Assembly (NCBI RefSeq): GCF_030684315.1
Contig: NC_081369.1
Coordinates: 9,400,035 to 9,464,034, forward strand
DNA length: 64,000 nucleotides
From: Stegostoma tigrinum
Taxonomy: Eukaryota
Direction of reading: 5' to 3'
Shown: positions 3,092-60,507 of the stretch, piece by piece
How the letters are laid out: every line of letters starts with the position of its first letter
How positions within the stretch are numbered: position 1 is the stretch's first letter
Notes under the pieces: generated by a model
The model's database searches: none
Seen by the model: only the letters and a program-made list of their open reading frames with translations
What the model was told of the DNA's origin: nothing
Program-made: the position numbers and the translations under genes

Positions 3092-3526
3092 TTCACATGA
3101 GCTTGAGAGAGTGAAAAAAAAAGTGATCGCCCTGGCCCTGCCGTCCAGCTCAAACCAGCCGGGGATCTGTTGCTCAGCTGGGGTTAGGTTCAAACTATCA
3201 GTACGTCCCAAGAAACACAACTTCACCCTATTCTCACCTTGATCCTTCCTTGTACAGGTACATGTCTTCAATTCAACAATTGCTAGATGGAAAAAGCTGT
3301 AAAATGTGTAGGTGATATTAACTATGTATGGGCATGACTATTTATGCTGATGTTGCGACAAGCTCTTTATGGAGTTTCTGGCCTTTCAGTGGAAGGGATA
3401 CATCTGTGCAATCATAACTGCTGCTCCTGAGCCCTAGTTGTTCCCTTGTTTGCTGCTACAAGTTCCCGACACTCTGTCGTTCTCTTGTAAATAAATGTTT
3501 CGTATTTTTGTTTGTTTTGGCAACAG

Positions 3527-3814
3527 TTGCCGCTCGTATGACTCAATTTCTGCGATCGCCCAATGTAACAGTAAGACAGACCGTGACTTTTCACTGCTCG
3601 TTGCTGCTATTCCGAGGTAGGAACCAAGTCGTGGTGCATTGGTGGAAAGCTGGTGACCAGGAATTCTTGAACTCAAAACAAGATTCCTGGAGAGTGTTTC
3701 ACATTGAGAACGAAGCCAGCGCAAACCCACAATGTGCGTTTTAGAAATGTTGGCATCTGTTATTGCAGTTTGAACAGACTGGAAATGGAATCGGCATACA
3801 GCTGAATGTAAGCG
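3527..3814 (+). pseudogene. Frameshifted VJ-type Ig V exon (paralogue 1)
   Basis: Acceptor ttttggcaacag; RMTQ...QTVTFHCSL...VVHWWKAGDQ...FHIENEASA / NVRFRNVGICYCSL / TGNGIGIQLNVS read across two frameshifts; donor decayed to G|GAGAGT. Possible decayed leader at 3344-3396. Confidence 0.85.
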
Positions 3815-3823
3815 GAGAGTAAT

Positions 3824-4100
3824 CAACCCCAGCGACTTTGAAAATACGGCAGTTAGATGGACAGGAAGTTTGAAATGGCAGCTCTTCTGCTAATGATAAT
3901 GCAAATGATTATTAATTTCTCCCCTATTACGGTAGGCTGAGAGAACACCCAGTGTGCAGCGGGCTAATGTATATGGAAAGGTGGAACAGCTTGGGTGCAG
4001 CATTCCCCAACATTACTCAGTGGCCGCAGGAAGTTGGCGCTCTTGTTGCTAAAATTTCAAATCGAAAAACTAGATGTTCAGCAATTGTCAGTGCAAAGCA
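3824..4100 (+). pseudogene. Possible decayed C1 exon remnant abutting the V pseudo-exon
   Basis: (A)TPATLKIRQ resembles the intact C1 start APVPLKITP; FSPITVG* and SGLMY fragments follow. The end coordinate is approximate. Confidence 0.35.
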
Positions 4101-13357: not shown

Positions 13358-14024
13358 ATTCAAGCTATGCATTGACTGGATTTTCTGTTTTATAATATTC
13401 CACTTAAAAATATTATGTTTATAGTATCTCCACTGCAACATTATTTTAATTTGATATTCTGTATCAATTATCTTTCATGGGGAAGGTTGATTCCCTTATA
13501 ATTTTTTGACTAATTTACTTTTCCATGTTATATCACAGTTAATTAGAAAGAGACTTGGGTACACAATCCACAATGAAATGCCAATGTGAGCAATTGGTTC
13601 AATGCTCAAAATGCCAAAATTCTGTAGTGCATTATAAAGAAAGTCCATCTACTCTGTAAGATGTACTTAAAAGACCCCAGAACAAAATTTTAAGAAGAGC
13701 AGAGATGCTATTCTTAGCGCTCCAATTGATATCTATCAATAGAAATGATGAAAATAGATAAATCACCATCATCTTATTTCTGGTTCAAAAGCAATTCTGT
13801 CGGCAAGTTGACTGTTTGTACTCTTACAATGTTGACTGTGTTTCCAAAATTATTTCATAGGATGTGGAGTACTTTCGGATAAACGCATCCATTCATTATT
13901 TTGACAATGCTAGCACTGCATCTTGATCAACACAGTCAAATACCATTCCAGGTTTTAAAACTGTTGGCATGTTAAATGTGTTCCCTGGATACTCTGTTCA
14001 TATTAATTTTTGTTTTCCTTCCAG

Positions 14025-14320
14025 CTCCCAAATATGATATTCCAAAGACGCAATGCATTTGAAGATCTGCAGCAATAACAGTGAATCTGAAATGCAAAGT
14101 GAAAGGTTGAAATCAAAGCAGTACTCTAGTGCGAGCCGTGAGCTCAGACAAAACATCAAATGTTAACCAACCTGCATCAAAATGTAAGAATCAGTGTAAG
14201 AATAGGAGGGAACTTGTGCATCCCAGATGGTTGAAGAAGAAATCTGAAGTGTATTCCATAACAGCCATAGGTTCTCTTTGCAGAACACCTACATTGTTTT
14301 GAGCAGCATAGTTCATAAGT
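14025..14320 (+). pseudogene. Possible decayed Ig C-type exon
   Basis: Strong acceptor ttttccttccag; AP...TVNLKCKVKG* and a later NTYIVLSSI fragment; several stops. Confidence 0.3.
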
Positions 14321-28320: not shown

Positions 28321-28942
28321 AAGATAGAAGCTGCTGAAGAAGTCAAACCTTTTTTCCCCTCTCTTGCTTCCTGCTAGAAAGTGGGGTTTCTCTTCATTCT
28401 ACAAATGTTGCATGTAGGAAAGCCTGATTTTTGAATTTGCCTTTTTGCCAATGGCTATGGTTATGGGATTTTACTATATTAGAGCAGTGAATTAGTAATG
28501 GTTGCTCTATTTATTTTCTGTTAAGTTTTCCAGTAGAATTGTTATTCCAAGTTCTTCCTTCTTTTGTTGAATTTAAACTATAGTTTTGAATACATTGTGT
28601 TTTGCTTAATATCAACTAGATTGACCATTCCAATTGCATTTGGACACAGCATCTCCCATTTACCGTTAAAATAAGAAAATGTTAGGTTCTGGGCTCAAAA
28701 GCAGAAATTGCTGGAATAGCTCAGCAGCTCTGGCAGCATCTGTGGAGATAGAACAGAGTGAGTGCTTTGGTTCAAGTTATCTTTCCTCAGAACTGAGGGT
28801 CTACATTACATTCTTAATACATTTTGACGGCTGGTCCATAGCAGTTGTCCTTGTGAATATGCACATCCATTGTTTTTACTTCCTCTCCTTTAGAGGATTG
28901 TGTAGACAAGTATAACTGCTGTTAGTATTCATTGACTCACAG

Positions 28943-29258
28943 TTACTATTGATGTATCTGTTCAATTAAAACAAGGCCCTGAAATCATGACTGCCACCAA
29001 AAACCGAGCCATTACCTTCTCCTGCACATTCCCTCTTCTGAAATAATCTAGCAGTGAATGTTTGCTTGATGAATCTTGGTGACACGACAATGCTGGGAAC
29101 AGGACTAAATGAAGGAAAGAATTTCACACCAAAAAGGGCAATGGCTCTTTGCAGCTGCTCAACATTAAGTGTGAAAGATGCATGGATCTATTTCTATGGA
29201 GTGTCATTTTAAAGCAAAGTAATTGGTAACTGGATTGCATCTCTGTTCATTGCACATG
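28943..29258 (+). pseudogene. Decayed VJ-type Ig V exon (paralogue 2)
   Basis: Acceptor gactcacag; VQLKQGPEIMTATKNRAITFSCTFPLLK* / VNVCLMNLGD / GNGSLQLLNI / SVKDAWIYFYGVSF*SKVIGNWIASLFIAH; donor decayed to G|ATATGT. Confidence 0.82.
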
Positions 29259-43540: not shown

Positions 43541-46189
43541 TTAAGTTCTACTGTACCCTCACCATTTAAATGCAAACTTCAGTGTCAGTGATATCTTCTT
43601 ACCTGAACTGGAAATGAGAATTCAAATGAAAGTTAACATTGATAACGATATTATCTGTCATCAGCGAATGTCAATTATTTTGAAATACAGTTTACGCGAA
43701 TGGTATGATTGCAGAATATTAAAAAAACTTTCATAGCAATATCGATAGTTATTTGTTTGATAAAGATGTCCCTATTGAAAGATGTTAAATTAAGTGTGCC
43801 CTCCTCTACAATCAGTTGCTAACTCATTCTGTTGTGGTTCAAACCCGAAAGTGAAGAAGGACGGGTGTCTGGGAAACGTAAACTGTAAAACAATGCAATA
43901 TCTCAACTTATCCATCTTACAATGCCAACGGGACTGATCTCCCATACTAACTCCAATTCTCTACCTATCTCCATATTTGTTGACACTTTATTCATTTTGT
44001 TGTCGTGTGTTTTGCAAGAAAGTTAAATATTTCTCGTTTATCTCGATGTACCTGTGAGATATTGGCGATGAGGTGATTGGGCAGGACGGGGTTACAGTCA
44101 GAGATTTTTTACGGTCGCCGATGGAATTTAGAATAGAACGGCTGATACTCAAAATAAGCAGTGTCTCATTCGAACATCTACAACTAAGTTAAGGAGAAAC
44201 TTACTTGGTTTGAATATCTACAAACTTGACTACCTCAGCCAGTTGCGTTTGCTCTATTCTTAAATAAATTAAACACTATGATAGAAAATTTCTGAACTTT
44301 CAGGAATTAAAGAATCTGTACTGCGTGGCAGTAACTGCAGCTGAGGTGGAAAACCAGGCATGTTTGCCTGCAGAAGGAGAAACTGTCTTCAGGGGACTTA
44401 TTATCCGGTCTAGGTCTAAACGGTTACTGTGCTGTGTTTGCTCAGTGCAAAACCATTTCAGCCAATAATCAAGAGAAACCTCGGCGAACCTTTCTCTGGA
44501 GCTACAGAGATATCAGGCAGGCTAAGAACCCCCGAAGTTTATGCAATGAAGACGTTCAGCAATGAGATGGTTTTCCTTGGTCCGCAAACGATGCTCTCTT
44601 ATATTTCAAGTAAAATGCAGAACAAAAACCTCCAAGTTGCGATAAGATGCAGCTTTGCAAAACCCTTGTTGCAATCCAGACTTGTCAATCATTTTTGACA
44701 TTGCTTTCACGTTTCATGTGTATTTGCATTCGGGAATATGAGAACTAAGTAATTATTTCAAATATTACTACATTTTATTTATTCCAGGATATGCAAGACA
44801 TAAACAAGAGCTGGCAGATTCTGAAACGGCAACGAATTTTGCTGTAATAGAAATAGTATAACATAGTCATTCCAGAATATTTCAATCTACTGGCTGAAAT
44901 ATCGGTCAGCTGACAGTAACTCTTTCAAACTATGGTGAGAAATGATGGTGCAAGTAATTATTTTTTAATATTTCATGGAAATTTTCCGGGTTACTTAAAG
45001 ATGTGCCGAGGTACTAACTGATTGTTAATAAAACGATGCTTCCTCAGGTTTGAGGAAGCATATCTTAATATTGTAAATTTGCTGCTCATGTCAGTAATAC
45101 TGCCCTCTTGCGTAAACGCTGGCAGTATTATATATTATCTATAGGCAGCACAGTGCTCCAATGATTGCATTTGTGTACACATGTATAGGTTATCGTTTGT
45201 GCGCCTCATCTCAAATTCTTGTCAACTCTTGTTGCAAATTGGTGAAAACCCACAGCTGTATATTTGTATTCTGGCACGTGTAGGGATAATGTACTAAGGC
45301 CGTGCATTTTATTGCATTGGATTTGATCAGAAGCAAGAAGTTATCCCGCCACAAATATGAAGGGGAAAAATACATTTATGCCAAGGTTGATTTATTGGCA
45401 TAGATCACCAACATACGATTAACATTTATGCAAATATGAAGGCAATGGATTCTTGTGGATTGACACTGTTCACAACTGTGGCGTTTTGCAACCCTGCTGA
45501 TAACAACTTCGAAGCACTGCCTAAAGCTGTGAAAATGATAAATTGGGTATATTATTATGAAACATTGGATTTGCAAGAAAGTGCAAAAATTAAGAGAAAT
45601 ATTCGAGAATGTGCCCAATTGTAGATAAACAAGGGAAAGTGGACTACTGACACTGTCCACGTGGAAACAATATAAATGAGTAAAAAACGTATACGCGCAA
45701 ACGTCATTCTATTGTTGTCGATATTTTCTGATCAATATGTTAATGAATGATATTACACAACCTCTTTAGCAGGAGGGACTTGACGCCAAACATCTAGCCC
45801 AGTAGCAGCAATACCGACATTTCTCCACAGGAGATTTTGGCTTTATTTCTGTGTTGTGTCATGTCAACTCAGGTTTGTGAATAGTGGGTGATAACATTCA
45901 ACAGAGATATAAGACATTACATTGATGTCATTACATGGAACGTTATCTACAGTAAAACGAAAATGCATTCAAGTATTTGTTTTATGTTCCGCTAAAGGTT
46001 TTTATGAATGAAAACTTTCTCACAAAATCTACTGCTATAATTTTTATATGAACTGAGTCAATATATTTCTCTGATTGTGGTTTCGCAATACTATGGTATT
46101 ATCTGGTTTGTACAAAGTTCTGAATTCAACAAACACAGAAGCTATGCTACCTGCTAAAAATCAGCATGCTACCTACTGAAAATCAGGGT

Positions 46190-53522: not shown

Positions 53523-53577
53523 ATGCCAGCGAGGATGATTTTTTTCTGCCTGACACTACTCGAGTTTATTCTTGCTG
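53523..53577 (+). CDS. Signal peptide (leader) exon MPARMIFFCLTLLEFILA
   Basis: ATG, hydrophobic core, phase-1 donor G|GTACTT, and a 166-nt intron before the V exon, as is typical of IgSF leaders. Confidence 0.8.
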
Positions 53578-56500
53578 GTACTTTGGTTTTTGATTCACAG
53601 AACTGCTTTAATTCATTAAAGACTTTCGATGCAGCTCCTCCTTCCATTAAATAATCTTAATTCATCTATCTTGTTAAGAACTTAACTCTCCTATCTTTAT
53701 GCCGAATACGACAGTTAACTATGTTTTATTTTGTTTCTGACAGCTGCGGACCACACTTGTTTTAGGGTTACTCAAATACCTAAAAGAGCAGCTGCGAACA
53801 GACGGGAAGACATTACCTTCTACTGTACATTCTCCATTTGTCAGCAAAGTTCAAAGCCAAATGTAATTTGGTGGAAGCAGGTTGGGAATGAACGTGTTCA
53901 GATTGAAGCCAGTGGTAGACAACAATTTGGATTTGAAAATGAAGCAACAGCGTTCCTTAGCTTGCTGCGCGTTGATATCCAAGATTCTGGACATTATCAC
54001 TGCACGGTGAATTACCAAGGAATCGGTCAAAGAAGCGGAACCCCGTCCCAGCTATTTGTGCGTGGTAAGTGAGAGCGACACTGTCTGAAATAATTTGAAA
54101 TAACAAGATATTTCCTGATCGCTGATTTCACCAATATTGGCGGTTAAATCGTGTCCAGTTATCATTTATACAGGAACCTACCCTTGATATTTCAGTTCCG
54201 TTGAAAAAAAGTAAAATTACACGATCAATATCACCGGTAGAAAACTGAAGCTTTTATAAATATTAACAATTTACGCTGTAATTCTAAAGACAGCCTATAC
54301 ACTATGTGCTTTTTGCCGATATACAAAACTTCCGATGTACATAGGCAACAAGAAACCGCTTTGTCAGGCTATTCGTCCACAATTCTTAGTCCCTGGTATG
54401 TTATTGAAGTCGTGTGACTGCCCGACAATTATTTTTTCTGAGATTGAAGATTCTAGAAATTTATTCTCACATTAATTTCACGTCATAATTTGAAAATCAG
54501 CATGAACTTATTTCATGAGTGAAGGAATCGATGCAAAAGAAACACAGTTTGACAGATACAAGTAGGTACAATCACTGACCTAGAATAAATAAAACAACGC
54601 AGAGAATCTGTAGCAATAACAAATTTGCTGGAAAAGCTCAGCAGGTCTGGCAGCATCTGTGGAGGACAAAACAGAGTTAACGTTTCGGGTCCGGTGACCC
54701 TTCCTCAGAACTTAAAGTTCAACTGATTCAATGTGTTTTGTCAATTGAAATGCCTTGTTTTTGAAATCCGACTGATACAGTGATCTTGGGGTAATCGGCA
54801 ATCTGCAACTTCACCGCCGTTATGCACTTGAGCTTAAAAAAAACACCAGGGCAGACGAGCACAATTTGCTTTGTTCCTTTCTTGTGCGCAAGCTCAATTT
54901 AATTAATTTATTCAAATATGCGACATAAGCATTGCGAAGCATTTTGTAGTTTTGTTCTGCCGAGGAAGGCCAAGTATTGGATTTGATAATTCAAGTAAAA
55001 ATGGATAAAAGCCGCTGCCTGGAGAGCTATTTGTTTCATTAACTGAATGCTTGTGCATAAAATTAAGTTGAGAAGAAACTGCACTTCTGAGCATTGTATT
55101 TCTAGGAAAGCATAGCGTCTGTAAATCAGCCTCAAATTTAACAATTTCTGATTTGTTCCAGTAACTTGGCTTTGTTCAATCTCTGCTTGCAGTTGCTCCA
55201 GTCCCACTGAAAATTACGCCCAAGTTTCACGAAGAAAATTCACTTGTGTCTTTGACCCTTCTGTGTGAAACAGCTGCATTTTATCCGGAGGATTTCACCC
55301 TCGCCTGGTATAAAAACGGCACGAAAACTACAGTCGGTATAAATACGAGCAAGGTGCAGAACAGTGAGGGACTGTATGAAGTATCCAGTTCTTTGGTTGA
55401 TCCTCATCCTCCCTCAAGTAATCTCAAGTATACCTGTGAAATATCTCACATCTCCCTCAAGACGCCTGCTGTTGTAACCCACAGTATTTCCACATTTGGC
55501 GGATTCCAAAAAGGCGAGTTAGTTGCTGTCAGTTTTGTTACGAAATGCATCGTAGAATAGTGCAACGTGTGGGCCTAATCCGCAGTGGTTTCATGGAGAT
55601 GTATTTAAATGTATTATACTAAGTTGACATCTCTGTTGTAAGAGCATCAAAACTTATTTGGTATTCTATTTCTTTGACTTTTGAAATAGTAATTATGTTC
55701 AGAATTGAGCTGATCTATCCATTTGTTTCTTCCTATCATTTTGTCCACGTTCACCTTCTTTGCCCAAGCTATGCCTACCTCTTTGTAGGTTACGTGGCAC
55801 AATCCCTCTTCTGTACCTACACTGGTCCTAAACATCACTTTTTCCTCTGTTACATTGATGACTGCATTGCCATCTCCTTGTGCTCCCATGAGGAGCTCGA
55901 GCAGTTCATCCACTTCACCCACAGACTCCCACAGCTACCTGGAATACACCTCCTCCCACCCACCTTCCTGCAAAAATGCCATTCCCTCCTCCCAATTCCT
56001 TTGTCTCTGCCACATCTGCTCCGAGGATGAGGCATTCCACTCCCGTACATCTCTGATGTCCTCGTTTTTCAAGGATCGCAACTTCCCTGCTCAATGGTTG
56101 AGAATGCCCTCGACGGTGTCTCCCGCATTTCCCACAACTCATCCCTCACACATCCTCCCTGCAAAAACAACCAAAACAGAATCCCCCTCATCCTCATGTA
56201 CCACCTCACCAACCTCCTGATCCAATGCATCATCTTCCGACACTTCCGCCATCTGCAATCCGACCCCACCCTTAAAGACGTTTTTCCCACCCTCATCTGC
56301 TTTTTGGAGGGACCACTCTCTCCATGAATCCCTCGTCCGCTCCACACTCCCCTCCAGCGCTACCACACCGACACTTTTCCCTGCAACCACAGGAAGTGCT
56401 ACACCTGCCCCTACACCTCCCCCTTCACCCTCATCTCAGGTCCCAAGAAGACTATCCACATCAAGCAGATGTTCACCTGCACATCTGCTAATGTGGTATA

Positions 56501-59500
56501 CTGATCCACTGTTCCTGTTGTTGCCTCATCTACATCGGGGAAACCACGCGGAGGCTTGGGGACCACTTTGCAGAACACCTATTCTCAGTTCGCACTAAAC
56601 AACTGCACCTCCCAGTTGCGAATCTTTTCAACTTCCACTCCCGTTCCGCAGGTGACATGTCCATCCTGGGCCTCCTGCAGTGCCGCAACGATGCTACCTG
56701 AAGGTTGCAGGAACAGCGTCCTATATTTCACTTGGGAACCCTGCAGCCCAATGGTATCAATGTGGACTTCACAGGCTTCAAAATCTCCCTCCCCCACTGC
56801 ATCCCCAAACCAGTCACTTTCTGGATTACCCCAATCCAGAAATTGAAGTGGACAGTTGAGAAAATGCTTGTGATATCATTCCTCTAAATTTAAGAAAGCA
56901 TAATTAGTAAGTAAGAAAGCTCGAGAACAACAGTATTTTGATTCATGGGGAATTGACTTATCTCATATTCCTACCTTTCCGAAACAGTCCTTTGTGTTCC
57001 ATAAATTGACAATCTATTCCAGAGATTGATTCAGAATTTGCCATGTTGGATCAAGAATTCACTTCGATATTTAACAGAAATAATCTTTGGCAGTTCAGCT
57101 TTTTCATTGTCCTTGAATAGCGCTGTGCAGTTGAAAGTATCATCACATTTTAAGCAAAGAACTAAAGTGACAATATTTTTAATTTAATGATCACATGCAA
57201 ATAATGTCTTCTTTATCCTGCAGACAGTATCAACAATTCACTGGTCATCTGGCCTTCAGTTCGTTATGTGATTTTCTCGGCGCTTGTTGTAATTCTGTTC
57301 GTGTTTGGGACTACAAAGTACTTGAGGATATCAGAAGTAAGGTCTACTATCAAAGCTTGCTTTTCGCACAGGGCCTGGGTTCATTTGCCATTTCTGGAAA
57401 ACAAGCAGGATACTTATTAGGGATAATTCGAATTGGTTGAAGACTGAAAAATGCAATCATTTTGTTCTTTTTTCCCCCGCAAACGTGGATTGCTCCAAAG
57501 CCACTTAAAAACACAAGAAGGTTCTTGGAAACATGAGTGAACCATTCAGCCCCTTTGGGCCTGTTCTGCCATTCAAAGAGATCATGGTTGATGAATGGCT
57601 TAACTCTATATCCTTGTCCCTAAACACTTTGCTTAACAAAAATAAATCGATCCCAGATTTAAAATTAAAATTAACTTCTATTTGTTGAAAAGTCTTGCAA
57701 ACATGTGCATAGAAGAGCTTCCTCACATCTTTCTTGAATGATCTTGTTGCAAGTTTTAGAGTATGACCACCAGTTCTAGAATCCACAACCAGCAGAAGTA
57801 GTATATGTTACTGACAAAGTGTGAAGAGGGTCTTCGGTCCGCCTCCTCCTCTCTCCCTATTTATTTCAGAACCCTCACCCCATCCCCCTCTCTGATGAAG
57901 GGTCTAGGCCCGAGACATCAGCTTTTGTGCTCCTGAGATGCTGCTTGGCCTGCTGTGCTCATCCAGCTTCACACTTTGTTATTTGGATTCTCCAGCATCT
58001 GCAGTTCCCATTATCACTGATACTATATTACTGACACTCTCTTTTGCTGTTAATGTCGTAAAGCCTTCAATTAGATCATCTCTCAACCTTCTAAATTAGA
58101 GAGAAAATAGTCTTAGTTTGTATAATCCCTCCATGTAATTAAATCCCTAAAGTCCACAATTATCATTCTGGTAATTGTACATCATACTCCTTCCAAGGTC
58201 AATGCACCTTTCCTGTGGTATGCTGCTCAGAACCGTTCACAGCTCACCAAAATGTTTTCAAATGTAAACAATGCTCACGTGTGTTAATTTCCAAAGGCAC
58301 ATTTCAGTTTTCAACATGAGAAATGAAATTTATCACAATAAATATGAAGTAGGTAATTCGATGCTTCTGTCAAGTAATGATTGCTCCTTGAAAGAATGGA
58401 GGATTAATAGCAGATTCTGATGTTGCAACCGTCTGATCTCTGCGAGCAACATAATCAAATGTATTCTGCCTCAACGGAACATTCACATCCTTTCTCTAAT
58501 ACTTTGATTCAGAAAAATGCGCTCATTTTCTGCATGGAAACTGAGTCAATATTTTCATCACTCAATGCAATTATATTTCATTGGTTTGCAGGTAAAGAAG
58601 AATGCACAAGGCAATCAGACTGCCATGTCAATGTGGTAAGTTCATATCATCATCATGCTTGGAGTTTGAAATGTTTGGATCAATGGCAATAATGGAAGAA
58701 ATATACATTAATAATGACAGAACATTTTATATCTATTTATTGAAAGACTATTCATCTGGTATGTGTGTGTTTCAGAGCCAGGTTTGAAGCGCAATTTGTA
58801 CAACTTGTATTACTGATGAAGGTTGGCAAGTGGATCTTCTTTAAAAAAAAACCGTAATCATATCTTTGAGAATGTTGCAAGGTTGAGTCACGTTTTAGGG
58901 TTGAGAACAAATTTACTGTCTAAACCCATTGCATCTAACACTTAACATTATGTTTCAGCATGAATATGAGGAAGTTTGAATTGTTGCATTGAACACTGAG
59001 ATTAACATTGTCTTCATGCAGATATATCTATAATATGGATTCTGCAAGGGATGTCGAGTCTTGGTTAAATATGCTTAGTCCTTGATGTAGAAAATCTTCG
59101 AGACAATGAAAAGGACACTTATTGAAGTGTTGTTCTTGTCCTCACAGGAAGCCATGGCGGAGGTTTCCTGCAATAGACTTAGGCAAAAACAGGAGAACTC
59201 CTAGACATACGTTTGAAATAGAGAAAAACATGCCTATTGAGGTAGGGCGGAGTGGGAGAACACAAAATCAGGATAAAATTGTGATTCAAGATAATAAAAT
59301 GTGAGGCTGGATGAACACAGCAGGCCAAGCAGCATCTCAGGAGCACAAAAGCTAATAAAATGTGAGGCTGGATGAACACAGCAGGCCAAGCAGCATCTCA
59401 GGAGCACAAAAGCTACTTGGCCTGCTGTGTTCATCCAGCCTCACATTTTATTATCTTGGATTCTCCAGCATCTGCAGTTCCCATTATCTCTAAAATTGTG

Positions 59501-59802
59501 ATTCAGCCTGACAATGAAGGCATTTGCTTCTATGGACATTAGCCAAATGTCATTTTGAAGCCTATTTTTGTGTCCTTCTGATTAGTGCTTTGCAGAAAGT
59601 TTATAAAAAAGGCCAATTAATAACATTTCCAAATAATATCTTTACAGCTCTCCATGTTGCTATCGGCAGTAAGATGACATACAGTCCTCTAAAGTTCTCT
59701 GTTTCTGCGAAGAAGGCACAGAGATTGCTTGAGCTGCAGACTGAAAAACAAAACAAAGTAACAGAAGATATCCATGCACAAGCAAGAAATAACAAGGCTT
59801 AA
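53523..59802 (+). CDS. Spliced gene: non-rearranging VJ-C1-TM Ig superfamily receptor (SIRP-like / NCR3-related architecture)
   Basis: Phase-compatible exons 53523-53577, 53744-54064, 55193-55513, 57224-57336 and 58592-58635, followed by either 59148-59304 (336 aa) or 59148-59241 + 59596-59802 (384 aa). Both models are open throughout. Two AATAAA signals at 59895 and 59911. Confidence 0.8.
53744..54064 (+). CDS. Ig V-set domain exon with germline-encoded J-like G strand
   Basis: Acceptor tttctgacag and donor G|GTAAGT, phase 1/1. Motifs FRVTQ, ITFYC, VIWWKQ, AFLSLLRVDIQDSGHYHC, GQRSGTPSQLFVR. Confidence 0.93.
54612..54720 (-). mobile_element. Family B half element in the V-C1 intron
   Basis: ttgctggaaaagctcagcaggtctggcagcatctgtgg...cccttcctcagaac. 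Confidence 0.85.
54675..54712 (-). ncRNA. Minimal type I hammerhead ribozyme (Penelope-type), intact consensus
   Basis: Minus strand AGUU-CUGAGGA-A-GGGUC-ACCG-GACCC-GAAAC-GUU/AACU: both core boxes, 5-bp stem II, 4-bp stem I, and the palindromic AACGUU stem III remnant. Confidence 0.8.
55193..55513 (+). CDS. Ig C1-set domain exon
   Basis: Acceptor ctctgcttgcag. VAPVPLKI...LTLLCETAAFYPEDFTLAWYKNG...GLYEVSSSL...YTCEISHISL contains the C1 hallmarks (CxxxxFYP, W, YxCxxxH). Ends at a GC donor, AAG|GCGAGT. Confidence 0.92.
55755..56812 (+). mobile_element. Penelope-like element fragment (RT + GIY-YIG endonuclease) in the C1-TM intron
   Basis: PSYAYLFVGYV...YIDDC; PTDSHSYLEYTSSHP..CKNAIP.SQFL; LIYIGET.RRL..FAEH; frameshifted. 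Confidence 0.93.
57224..57336 (+). CDS. Transmembrane exon DSINNSLVIWPSVRYVIFSALVVILFVFGTTKYLRISE
   Basis: Acceptor tctttatcctgcag with phase-1 entry matching the C1 exon; hydrophobic stretch followed by basic residues; donor GAA|GTAAGG. Confidence 0.85.
57500..58250 (-). mobile_element. Decayed CR1 3' region in the intron after the TM exon
   Basis: SRTGGHTLKL...FKKDVRK plus 3' UTR; split by a Penelope-derived insertion. Confidence 0.7.
57817..58023 (+). mobile_element. Penelope-derived family A element with about 13-bp TSD
   Basis: TSD TATGTTACTGACA (57804-57816) / TATATTACTGACA (58024-58036); hammerhead core mutated. Confidence 0.85.
58592..58635 (+). CDS. Short (44 nt) cytoplasmic exon
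   Basis: Acceptor ttggtttgcag and donor GTG|GTAAGT. Its length bridges the phase-0 TM donor to the only open frame of the next exon. Confidence 0.6.
59148..59802 (+). CDS. Terminal cytoplasmic exon region, interrupted by a Penelope-derived insertion
   Basis: Acceptor ttcttgtcctcacag; open frame KPWRRFPAIDLGKNRR... The distal segment carries MTYSPL and the decayed motifs IFTAL and IHAQA, stops at 59802, and is followed by polyA signals. Confidence 0.55.
59289..59490. mobile_element. Palindromic family A element with internal 61-bp tandem duplication and 15-bp TSD
   Basis: TSD TAAAATTGTGATTCA at 59274-59288 and 59491-59505; 61-bp unit at 59292-59352 and 59353-59413; ribozyme core deleted. Confidence 0.92.
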
Positions 59803-60039: not shown

Positions 60040-60507
60040 AATGAGAATTGCAGGAGAATCCAAGATAACAAAGCATGAAGCTGGATGAACACAGCAGGCC
60101 CAGCAGCATCTCAGGAGCACAAAAGCTGGCATTTTGGGCCTAGACCCTTCATCAGAGAGGGGGATGGGGAGAGAGTTAGGGTTAGAGTTAAACCCTAACC
60201 CTATCGCCTGTCCCCGTCCCCCTCTCTGAAGAAGGGTCTAGGCCTGAAACGTCAGCTTTTGTGCTCCTAAGATGCTGCTGGGCCTGCTGTGTTCATCCAG
60301 CTTCACACTTTGTTATCTTGGATTCTCCAGCATCTGCAGTTCTCATTATCTCTGATCACAATTTTAACCGCACTGTGAAGCCTCTTCCAGGGATGCCTAA
60401 CCTGAAGAAGTTACCTTCCTCTCTCTGGACCAACCTTAGGGAATCTCTCTCCAACTGCAACTCTCTTGTCCACCTATCTTCTCCTCTATCCATCTTCAGA
60501 AGTTGCT
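60040..60507. mobile_element. Palindromic family A element followed by Penelope-like internal sequence
   Basis: Inverted arms around a loop at about 60171-60210; plus-strand hammerhead core CTGAAGA...GAAACGTC at 60226-60253. Confidence 0.85.

Follow-up and report, generated by a model that had tools for sequence, protein, structure and literature searches.

Paired immune receptors with look-alike ectodomains, such as those of the SIRP, KIR, PILR and CD200R families, are read as footprints of an arms race in which pathogens hijack inhibitory receptors. In the tetrapod SIRP family (SIRP-alpha, -beta and -gamma), a germline V domain with a J-like strand precedes C1-set domains, giving three immunoglobulin (Ig) domains in the order V-C1-C1. 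Near-identical ectodomains are carried by inhibitory members with several immunoreceptor tyrosine-based inhibitory motifs (ITIMs; xTYAxL / TEYAxI) and by activating members with a basic transmembrane (TM) segment and a short tail. NKp30 (NCR3) has a non-rearranging VJ-type domain with the G strand G-x-G-N-G-[ST]-G-[ST]-x-L-x-V and an arginine in its TM segment. Kinlein and colleagues reportedly described in 2021 a nurse-shark NCR3 family of eight divergent subtypes linked to the major histocompatibility complex (MHC), beside which the family treated here is set by description only. In the white shark, the NCR3 family is likewise multi-copy, with 5 genes adjoining AIF1/PRRC2A (PMC10751288), while a 2026 survey places the origin of SIRP at Tetrapoda (PMC13262535). 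The shark-specific UrIg and UrIg2 combine a single-exon VJ and a split leader with C1-type constant domains, several in UrIg and nine to eleven in UrIg2, and are automatically annotated as light chains (PMC12227049). PMC10751288 and PMC11599192 list PRARP, a germline-joined VJ gene, beside NKp30 and SIRP and cite Fu et al. 2019 for it; the PRARP genes are of the non-rearranging VJ-C type and occur in birds, reptiles, amphibians and fish. Here, we describe a V-C1-TM gene on the + strand of a 64,000-nucleotide stretch of zebra-shark DNA (Stegostoma tigrinum, NC_081369.1, positions 9,400,035 to 9,464,034; hereafter the window). We put at roughly 0.5 the probability that it encodes the non-inhibitory partner, of activating type and/or soluble, in a matched pair of inhibitory and activating receptors within a multigene V(J-like)-C1-TM family.

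As read from the sequence, the gene runs from leader through V, C1 and TM to tail exons, with the following features (ORF, open reading frame):

53523-53577, + strand: leader exon, encoding MPARMIFFCLTLLEFILA plus 1 base; donor G/GTACTT, phase 1; equals residues 1-18 of RefSeq protein P0003
Between leader and V exons, + strand: intron 1, 166 nt
53744-54064, + strand: V/I-type Ig exon, 321 nt, with germline J-like G strand …GQRSGTPSQLFVR; donor G/GTAAGT, phase 1 to 1
55193-55513, + strand: C1-set Ig exon, 321 nt, …LTLLCETAAFYPEDFTLAWYKNG…YTCEISH…; phase 1 to 1, GC donor G/GCGAGT at 55514
55514-55560, + strand: read-through stretch past the GC donor, …FQK-GELVAVSFVTKCIVE then stop, within ORF 55246-55560; used by the RefSeq model
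57224-57336, + strand: TM exon, 113 nt, encoding SLVIWPSVRYVIFSALVVILFVFG, (D)SINNSLVIWPSVRYVIFSALVVILFVFGTTKYLRISE; acceptor tttatcctgcag/, donor GAA/GTAAGG, phase 1 to 0
58592-58635, + strand: cytoplasmic exon, 44 nt; homologous frame KEECTRQSDCHVNV (P0152: KEECTRQPDDRDKV), spliced frame VKKNAQGNQTAMSM
59148-59241, + strand: cytoplasmic exon, 94 nt; RRFPAIDLGKNRRTPRHTFEIEKNM aligns with P0152 VQYSAVHFSRDKTASTHTFQTERNM; ITIM Tyr replaced by Phe, frame change near the 5' end
59289-59491, unstranded: SINE-like insertion (short interspersed element) past the 59241 donor; flanking target duplication of 14 bp, AAAATTGTGATTCA, at 59275-59288 and 59492-59505
59648-59802, + strand: last exon; in the spliced phase LSMLLSAVR with stop 59675-59677, in the phase-1 frame …VAIGSKMTYSPLKFSVSAK… with stop 59800-59802 (ORF 59524-59802)

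Exons were searched singly, while full-length comparisons used the database proteins P0003 and P0152. An exhaustive HMMER search with the V exon returned P0003, a 247-residue protein that is 100% identical to the exon over residues 20-125. It corresponds to the Stegostoma tigrinum RefSeq records XP_059507815/818/819, several isoform records on a 68-Mb contig, and its leader, V and C1 borders coincide exactly with the exon borders read from the DNA. The structure given in the initial annotation, that of a leader, a short intron, a single-exon V ending in GTAAGT, one C1 exon and a TM exon, is confirmed in the sequence, the first three coding exons being joined identically in the database protein. 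Past the GC donor, P0003 reads through to …FQKGELVAVSFVTKCIVE, with its stop at 55558-55560.

The exon phases, in order, are 1 / 1-1 / 1-1 / 1-0 / 0-2 / 2-0. Compatible phases and an end at 59802 had been proposed as well. The two cytoplasmic exons (58592-58635 and 59148-59241) keep an open frame when spliced, through 59241. Since the upstream splice phases end in phase 0, however, the last exon is read in that phase and stops at 59677, not at 59802. The frame that ends at 59800-59802 is that of phase 1; it is homologous to the VTYTTL ITIM exon of P0152 and lies out of reach of the splice phases.

The V exon runs through its J-like strand directly into the splice donor, its 3' end reading …GIGQRSGTPSQLFVR (…QLFVR) and then G/GTAAGT. 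As had been stated before, no recombination signal sequence flanks the V exon: heptamer and nonamer are absent at both flanks, and the only CACnnTG (54003) lies inside coding sequence. A rearranging Ig or T-cell receptor (TCR) gene can thus be rejected, there being neither recombination signals nor a separate J segment. The J-like strand itself reads RSGTPSQLFV, as against GNGTGSxLxV in the family consensus. It is germline-encoded in the V exon, as initially proposed, but the motif is degraded here by the replacement of its second Gly with Pro. The sister copy P0172 retains GTGSQLFV, and P0152 shares the Gly-to-Pro change.

In terms of domain type, the C1 exon is unambiguous (Pfam C1-set PF07654, E 1.1e-10, 42.1 bits against a cut-off of 21), includes the hallmark YTCEISH, and matches Ig constant domains, UrIg2 and the SIRP C1. 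For the V exon, the I-set match (6.9e-8) is better than the V-set match, which falls below the Pfam cut-off (2.5e-4). The description of the gene as antigen-receptor-like holds for the non-rearranging V(J-like)-C1-TM arrangement but not for the V domain as such, which is I-set-like and, by profile comparison, NKp30-like rather than Ig/TCR-like. A list dominated by multi-Ig proteins (titin, Robo, DCC) was returned from the PDB by the V-only profile. The best single-domain PDB match of V, CD79b (5e-4), was rejected because no C1 domain is present in CD79b and the family profile favours other receptors. The AlphaFold model of P0003, which is confident (predicted local distance difference test score, pLDDT, 84.9), comprises two β-sandwich domains and a disordered read-through tail. 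Foldseek comparison of this model with the PDB gave only antibody light chains in Fab form and a TCR, while a non-redundant structural search placed B7-H6, Rst, PD-L2, nectins and butyrophilin at tied Z scores of 14-16. At the level of the model, these searches confirm the tandem V+C1 fold, without discriminating between families.

Four near-identical Stegostoma proteins are found on the one 68-Mb contig: P0003 (the gene studied), P0151, P0172 and P0152. The last of these (XP_059507523, 363 residues) is an inhibitory receptor by its layout, with the neutral TM segment VVLWALISIMVGFALVVLMAVIA and a 102-residue tail bearing VQYSAV, VTYTTL and TEYAAL. Its V domain is 100% identical to that of the gene and its C1 domain differs at 3 residues (97% identical), whereas the TM exon of the gene shares only ~30% identity with the P0152 TM (local alignment score 47). 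To judge by these alignments, the gene, one among four near-identical copies, departs from its ITIM-bearing paralog only from the TM exon onward. In a tree of ectodomains, obtained by quick search from 60 distinct rows, the four copies form one clade (support 100, starred, and as such to be read cautiously) and the gene is nested inside the family.

The TM exon encodes a clean 22-residue helix between a strong acceptor and a strong donor, with an Arg in the outer third of the helix (SVRYVIFSALVVILFVFG). The same placement of Arg or Lys recurs in 15-18 family members without ITIMs. Furthermore, the spacing R1-Y2…[K/R]19-Y20 is common to the gene and the catshark activating-type protein P0023, which lies in the same 11-row clade (97, again a starred value to be taken with caution), although only two sequences share it. 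The spliced tail frames of the gene contain no motif of the form [ILVST]xYxx[ILV]. With an outer-third Arg and neither ITIM nor immunoreceptor tyrosine-based switch motif (ITSM), the gene has the layout of an activating-type receptor, the use of the TM exon being predicted.

The tail exons nevertheless descend from an ITIM-bearing sequence. By tblastn, 58592-58635 is 62% identical to P0152 residues 272-287, and the second cytoplasmic exon matches P0152 at 59161-59232. Alignable pairs of gene and paralog are KEECTRQSDCHVNV/KEECTRQPDDRDKV, RRFPAIDL…RHTFEIEKNM/VQYSAVHF…THTFQTERNM and VAIGSKMTYSPLKF/DAIGNTVTYTTLML. No single consistent homologous frame runs through these exons: the first ITIM Tyr is replaced by Phe, and the frame homologous to VTYTTL is out of phase. 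Because the ectodomain is nearly identical and the ITIM frame of the tail is broken, the gene appears as the ligand-binding half of an inhibitory receptor that has lost the inhibitory half.

If the GC donor is spliced, as a GC-AG intron, the product would be a type I membrane protein. Its TM Arg could recruit an acidic adaptor with an immunoreceptor tyrosine-based activation motif (of the DAP12, FcR-gamma or CD3-zeta type), and binding of the same ligand as that of the inhibitory twin would then give an activating signal. If the weak GC donor is read through, a soluble V-C1 form would result. Either product, membrane-bound or soluble, would oppose or buffer the inhibitory twin.

Several points weigh against this proposal. 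The donor after C1 is GC instead of GT, and RefSeq models the read-through after C1 instead of the TM exon, both for the gene and for two sister copies. The public runs matching the locus are four, all of genomic DNA, and 55513^57224 and the other junctions are predictions from the sequence. An open frame of 113 nt would arise at random about 1 time in 6. In the J strand of the zebra-shark copy, Gly is Pro. Finally, the cytoplasmic exons are clearly decaying, for which reason the whole 3' half could be a relic.

The GC donor and the frame-broken tail exons are also what would be expected if the only real product were the 247-residue secreted V-C1 protein, a soluble decoy competing with the inhibitory twin for ligand, with the TM and tail exons as dead leftovers of an ITIM receptor. 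We regard this as possible but doubtful. The models of P0003, P0151 and P0172 do share the C-terminal read-through end GELVAVSFVTKCIVE, and 15 of the 69 family models surveyed lack a TM segment. On the other hand, read-through is frequent in gene models without RNA support, and no polyadenylation signal was seen in the sequence just downstream of 55560. Apart from the C at +2, AG/GCGAGT fits the strong consensus that functional GC-AG introns require. The TM exon, moreover, combines strong splice sites, an open frame and a 22-residue helix with an Arg placed as in activating-type members. The GC dinucleotide itself is not an assembly slip, since the covering DNA contigs (X3 and X4, from one sample) carry the reference sequence there and no variant was reported at this position in the four runs.

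The DNA contigs also bear on the integrity of the locus. Two variants in the C1 exon, 55227 T>A (F>L) and 55396 G>T (V>F), give exactly the residues of P0151/P0152. Contigs from sister copies therefore map to the locus, introns included, and the Stegostoma copies agree to ~99% outside the exons as well. One contig that covers the TM exon differs by 1.2%, with P>S and T>A changes (57253 and 57313), no frame break and an unchanged Arg. As the P0152 TM is too different to pass the 95% identity threshold, this contig is either an allele or a further copy with the same Arg-type TM.

That a second TM copy or allele keeps its frame speaks against regarding the gene as a decaying duplicate without a function of its own, in which the 5' half (promoter, leader, V and C1), the outcome of recent copying or gene conversion, sits on an old, dying 3' half. 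The intact leader, V, C1 and TM frames and the several RefSeq isoform records point the same way. This explanation would account for the GC donor, the Gly-to-Pro change in the J strand, the tail frame breaks with Tyr to Phe and the SINE insertion in the tail region, and the window holds three further family relics with stops (3460-3867, 28918-29223 and 45215-45388). The Gly-to-Pro change, however, is also present in the apparently functional inhibitory P0152, and we consider a decaying duplicate unlikely.

The proposed activating-type or soluble partner belongs to a large family. HMMER and profile searches returned dozens of relatives, and more than 60 V-C1-TM proteins are known from a chimaera (Callorhinchus), sharks (Heptranchias, Heterodontus, Scyliorhinus, Mustelus, Chiloscyllium, Hemiscyllium, Rhincodon and Cetorhinus) and rays (Hypanus, Hemitrygon, Mobula and Narcine). 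In the alignment, the zebra-shark gene agrees with the family consensus VTQxP…FYC…WWKxGE…QDSGVYHC…GNGTGSxLxV-PPTPLKI…LVCETAxFYPEN…WYKNG…GLYEVSS…YTCxVSHxSL. Against the family profile, cartilaginous-fish members score 231-491 bits and the next proteins, mammalian tapasin-related proteins, at most 77 bits. No strong relative from bony vertebrates was found in this search, which depends on a word index and leaves room for one. To the extent of the searches made, the family appears in cartilaginous fish only. The initial annotation had assigned the gene to a poorly characterised innate receptor family of cartilaginous fish. The placement is borne out, and our literature searches found no paper describing the V-C1 family and nothing relevant on SIRP in sharks or on PRARP, but the family is large and already present in public protein sets.

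Judged by TM and tail sequences, the family comprises inhibitory members (neutral TM, several ITIMs/ITSMs), activating-type members (short tail, TM with an Arg or Lys in its outer third) and truncated members. In a survey of 69 V-C1 family proteins, 18 had an Arg/Lys-TM without ITIM, 16 a neutral TM with ITIM/ITSM and 15 no TM, with 20 others. VTYAALDL and NTEYAEIQ are examples of the SIRP-alpha-like motifs in the tails. Certain family genes encode, in addition, V-TM-ITIM proteins that lack a C1 domain, an NKp30-like layout: P0095/P0108 (Heterodontus), P0056 (Narcine), P0066 and P0126. P0095 is listed as isoform X4, and its sequence is that of P0108 minus the C1 domain. Such isoforms hint that C1 loss could occur by exon skipping.

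Near-identical inhibitory/activating ectodomain pairs recur across the family, in Callorhinchus (P0043/P0165), in Heptranchias (P0190/P0198-P0200) and as P0077/P0110. Under the starred branches of the ectodomain tree, cautiously read, the activating label must have changed at least 7 times. Either the switch between inhibitory and activating types arises repeatedly, or TM types persist and the ectodomains within a species are homogenised. The R-Y…[K/R]-Y spacing common to the gene and P0023 lends some support to homogenisation.

Among described receptors, SIRP offers the closest parallel for the ectodomain as a whole. In both, a C1-set domain follows a germline V that includes a J-like strand, and both families pair inhibitory and activating members. 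The best contiguous V+C1 alignment in the PDB is that to SIRP-alpha d1-d2 (64.6 bits), followed by Ig lambda (58.4) and UrIg2 (50.0). Language-model features of the inhibitory paralog P0152 lie nearest to SIRP-alpha clusters (0.97, to be taken as a lead only), and many family members are entered at NCBI as SIRP-alpha-, beta- or gamma-like. In its C1 domain and its ITIM tails, the family looks most like SIRP-alpha, a likeness at the level of sequence. In contrast to SIRP, the gene has one C1 domain instead of two, and its V is short, I-set-like and closer to NCR3 than to the SIRP V.

The affinity to NCR3 resides in the V domain and, with the arginine, in the TM segment. Outside cartilaginous fish, the best match of V is a Polypterus protein (E 4e-7), which shares its cluster with a model that is fused to PRRC2A. 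Reedfish relatives of the Polypterus protein carry the name NCR3, and the polypterid proteins match human NKp30 at 1.5e-14. The family V profile aligns with polypterid NCR3 at 97.1% probability (E 7e-11, hhalign), and the gene's V matches P0086 at 5e-10 (BLASTP). NKp30 is absent among the 60 best PDB matches both of the gene's V and of the V profile. These alignments point to a relation between V and NCR3 that is real but distant. Mammalian and polypterid NKp30 lack a C1 domain, whereas the gene has a C1 exon that the RefSeq model joins to V. PRARP, with its layout of V, C, TM and ITIM, resembles the gene by description only.

With UrIg and UrIg2 the gene shares the single-exon VJ, the split leader, the C1-type constant domain and the restriction to sharks, and UrIg2 is the second-best PDB match of the family profile. 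The two systems differ in that the gene has one C1, and UrIg/UrIg2 show neither an ITIM/Arg-TM dichotomy nor a large birth-and-death family. Identity with either was rejected: their definition calls for VJ plus at least 3 C domains (PMC12227049), while tblastn of 98 family proteins against the window revealed no second C1 exon between V and TM, leaving one C1 in the window.

The shared VJ-like plus C1 architecture, with its split leader and phase-1 exons, could be taken to mark the gene as a relic of a UrIg-type antigen-receptor precursor from before RAG, a direct sister of Ig and TCR instead of an innate paired receptor. UrIg2 and Ig lambda are indeed among the best PDB sequence matches of the family profile, and the fold matches Ig light chains. 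Yet UrIg and UrIg2 are conserved or single-copy genes and have at least 3 C domains (PMC12227049), whereas this is a single-C1 gene in a multigene family of fast turnover. The V profile matches NCR3, which the same study places outside Ig/TCR/UrIg, the best contiguous V+C1 match is SIRP-alpha, and ITIM and Arg-TM signalling types are features of innate paired receptors. We therefore find such a relic highly improbable. As for the pre-RAG ancestors mentioned in the initial annotation, nothing ties the gene to them more closely than SIRP, NKp30 or UrIg, and the locus alone leaves the picture of antigen-receptor origins unchanged. The affinities are those of a paired Ig-superfamily immunoreceptor related to NKp30 and SIRP, not of a new kind of gene.

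The gene is not unannotated; RefSeq already includes it, misnamed as 'H-2 class II histocompatibility antigen, A-D beta chain-like'. A class II beta chain was rejected, as the N-terminal domain is an Ig I/V-set domain and not a peptide-binding beta-1 domain, and only the C1 domain resembles class II beta. Mislabelling by automated annotation had been anticipated, and it extends to the relatives, which pipelines have called SIRP-alpha-like, SIRP-beta-1-like, SIRP-gamma-like, tapasin-related-like, NCR3LG1-like, Ig-lambda-like, TCR-beta-like, CD276 homolog and H-2 class I- or class II-like. One family filed under at least 9 unrelated names (among them MHC class I/II, TCR-beta, Ig-lambda, tapasin-related, CD276, B7-H6-like and SIRP) will mislead the gene counts of comparative immunogenomics.

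No other genes were found in the 64-kb window, which contains family relics and repeats. A second family member, of a different subtype, is represented by a relic on the + strand at 3460-3867 and 13982-14212, its closest relatives being the 323-residue Hemiscyllium/Chiloscyllium proteins P0146/P0182 (50% identity). The first segment is a V exon with a stop that needs two frame changes and reads …HWWKAGDQEFL…, with a J-like TGNGIGIQLNV followed by gtaagc. The second, 10 kb downstream, is a stop-ridden TM/tail remnant, and no C1 exon was found between the two. Another V-like relic (28918-29223, + strand) reads …ITFSCTFPLLK and then stops. At 45215-45388 (+ strand), 16 kb downstream of it, lies the ITIM exon remnant VHFIALDLIRSKKLSRHKYEGEKYIYAK, with its first Tyr changed to Phe. 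The two probably belong to a single dead inhibitory member of the family, split by a long interspersed element (LINE) at 30.7-32.8 kb. Given these relics with stops, the window represents a birth-and-death cluster.

One SINE-like element recurs in both orientations, sometimes as an inverted pair, at 54600-54700, 57800-58020, 59289-59491 and 60060-60330, with a contig depth of about a million-fold. The intron between the C1 and TM exons holds a fragment of a very high-copy retroelement (55650-56850, + strand; contig depth 10^5 to 10^6), whose frame CCLIYIGETTRRLGDHFAEH includes a GIY-YIG nuclease-like motif as in Penelope-like elements.

A broader reading would take the cartilaginous-fish V-C1 family as the surviving ancestral form of NKp30, which would have lost its C1 domain, and of SIRP-type receptors, with ectodomain exons kept identical by repeated gene conversion and with ancient, distinct TM and tail exons. 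We put this forward tentatively and think it rather improbable. If true, the zebra-shark quartet, with its 100% V identity, ~30% TM identity and a TM motif shared with a catshark, would be among the earliest-branching vertebrate examples of pathogen-driven matched receptor pairs. The main interest of the locus lies in the matched inhibitory/non-inhibitory pair and not in its antigen-receptor-like shape. The zebra-shark gene and XP_059507523 form a concrete candidate pair for testing, and the locus suggests that a paired-receptor arrangement exists in a shark, built on a VJ-like plus C1 ectodomain that mixes NKp30-like and SIRP-like features.

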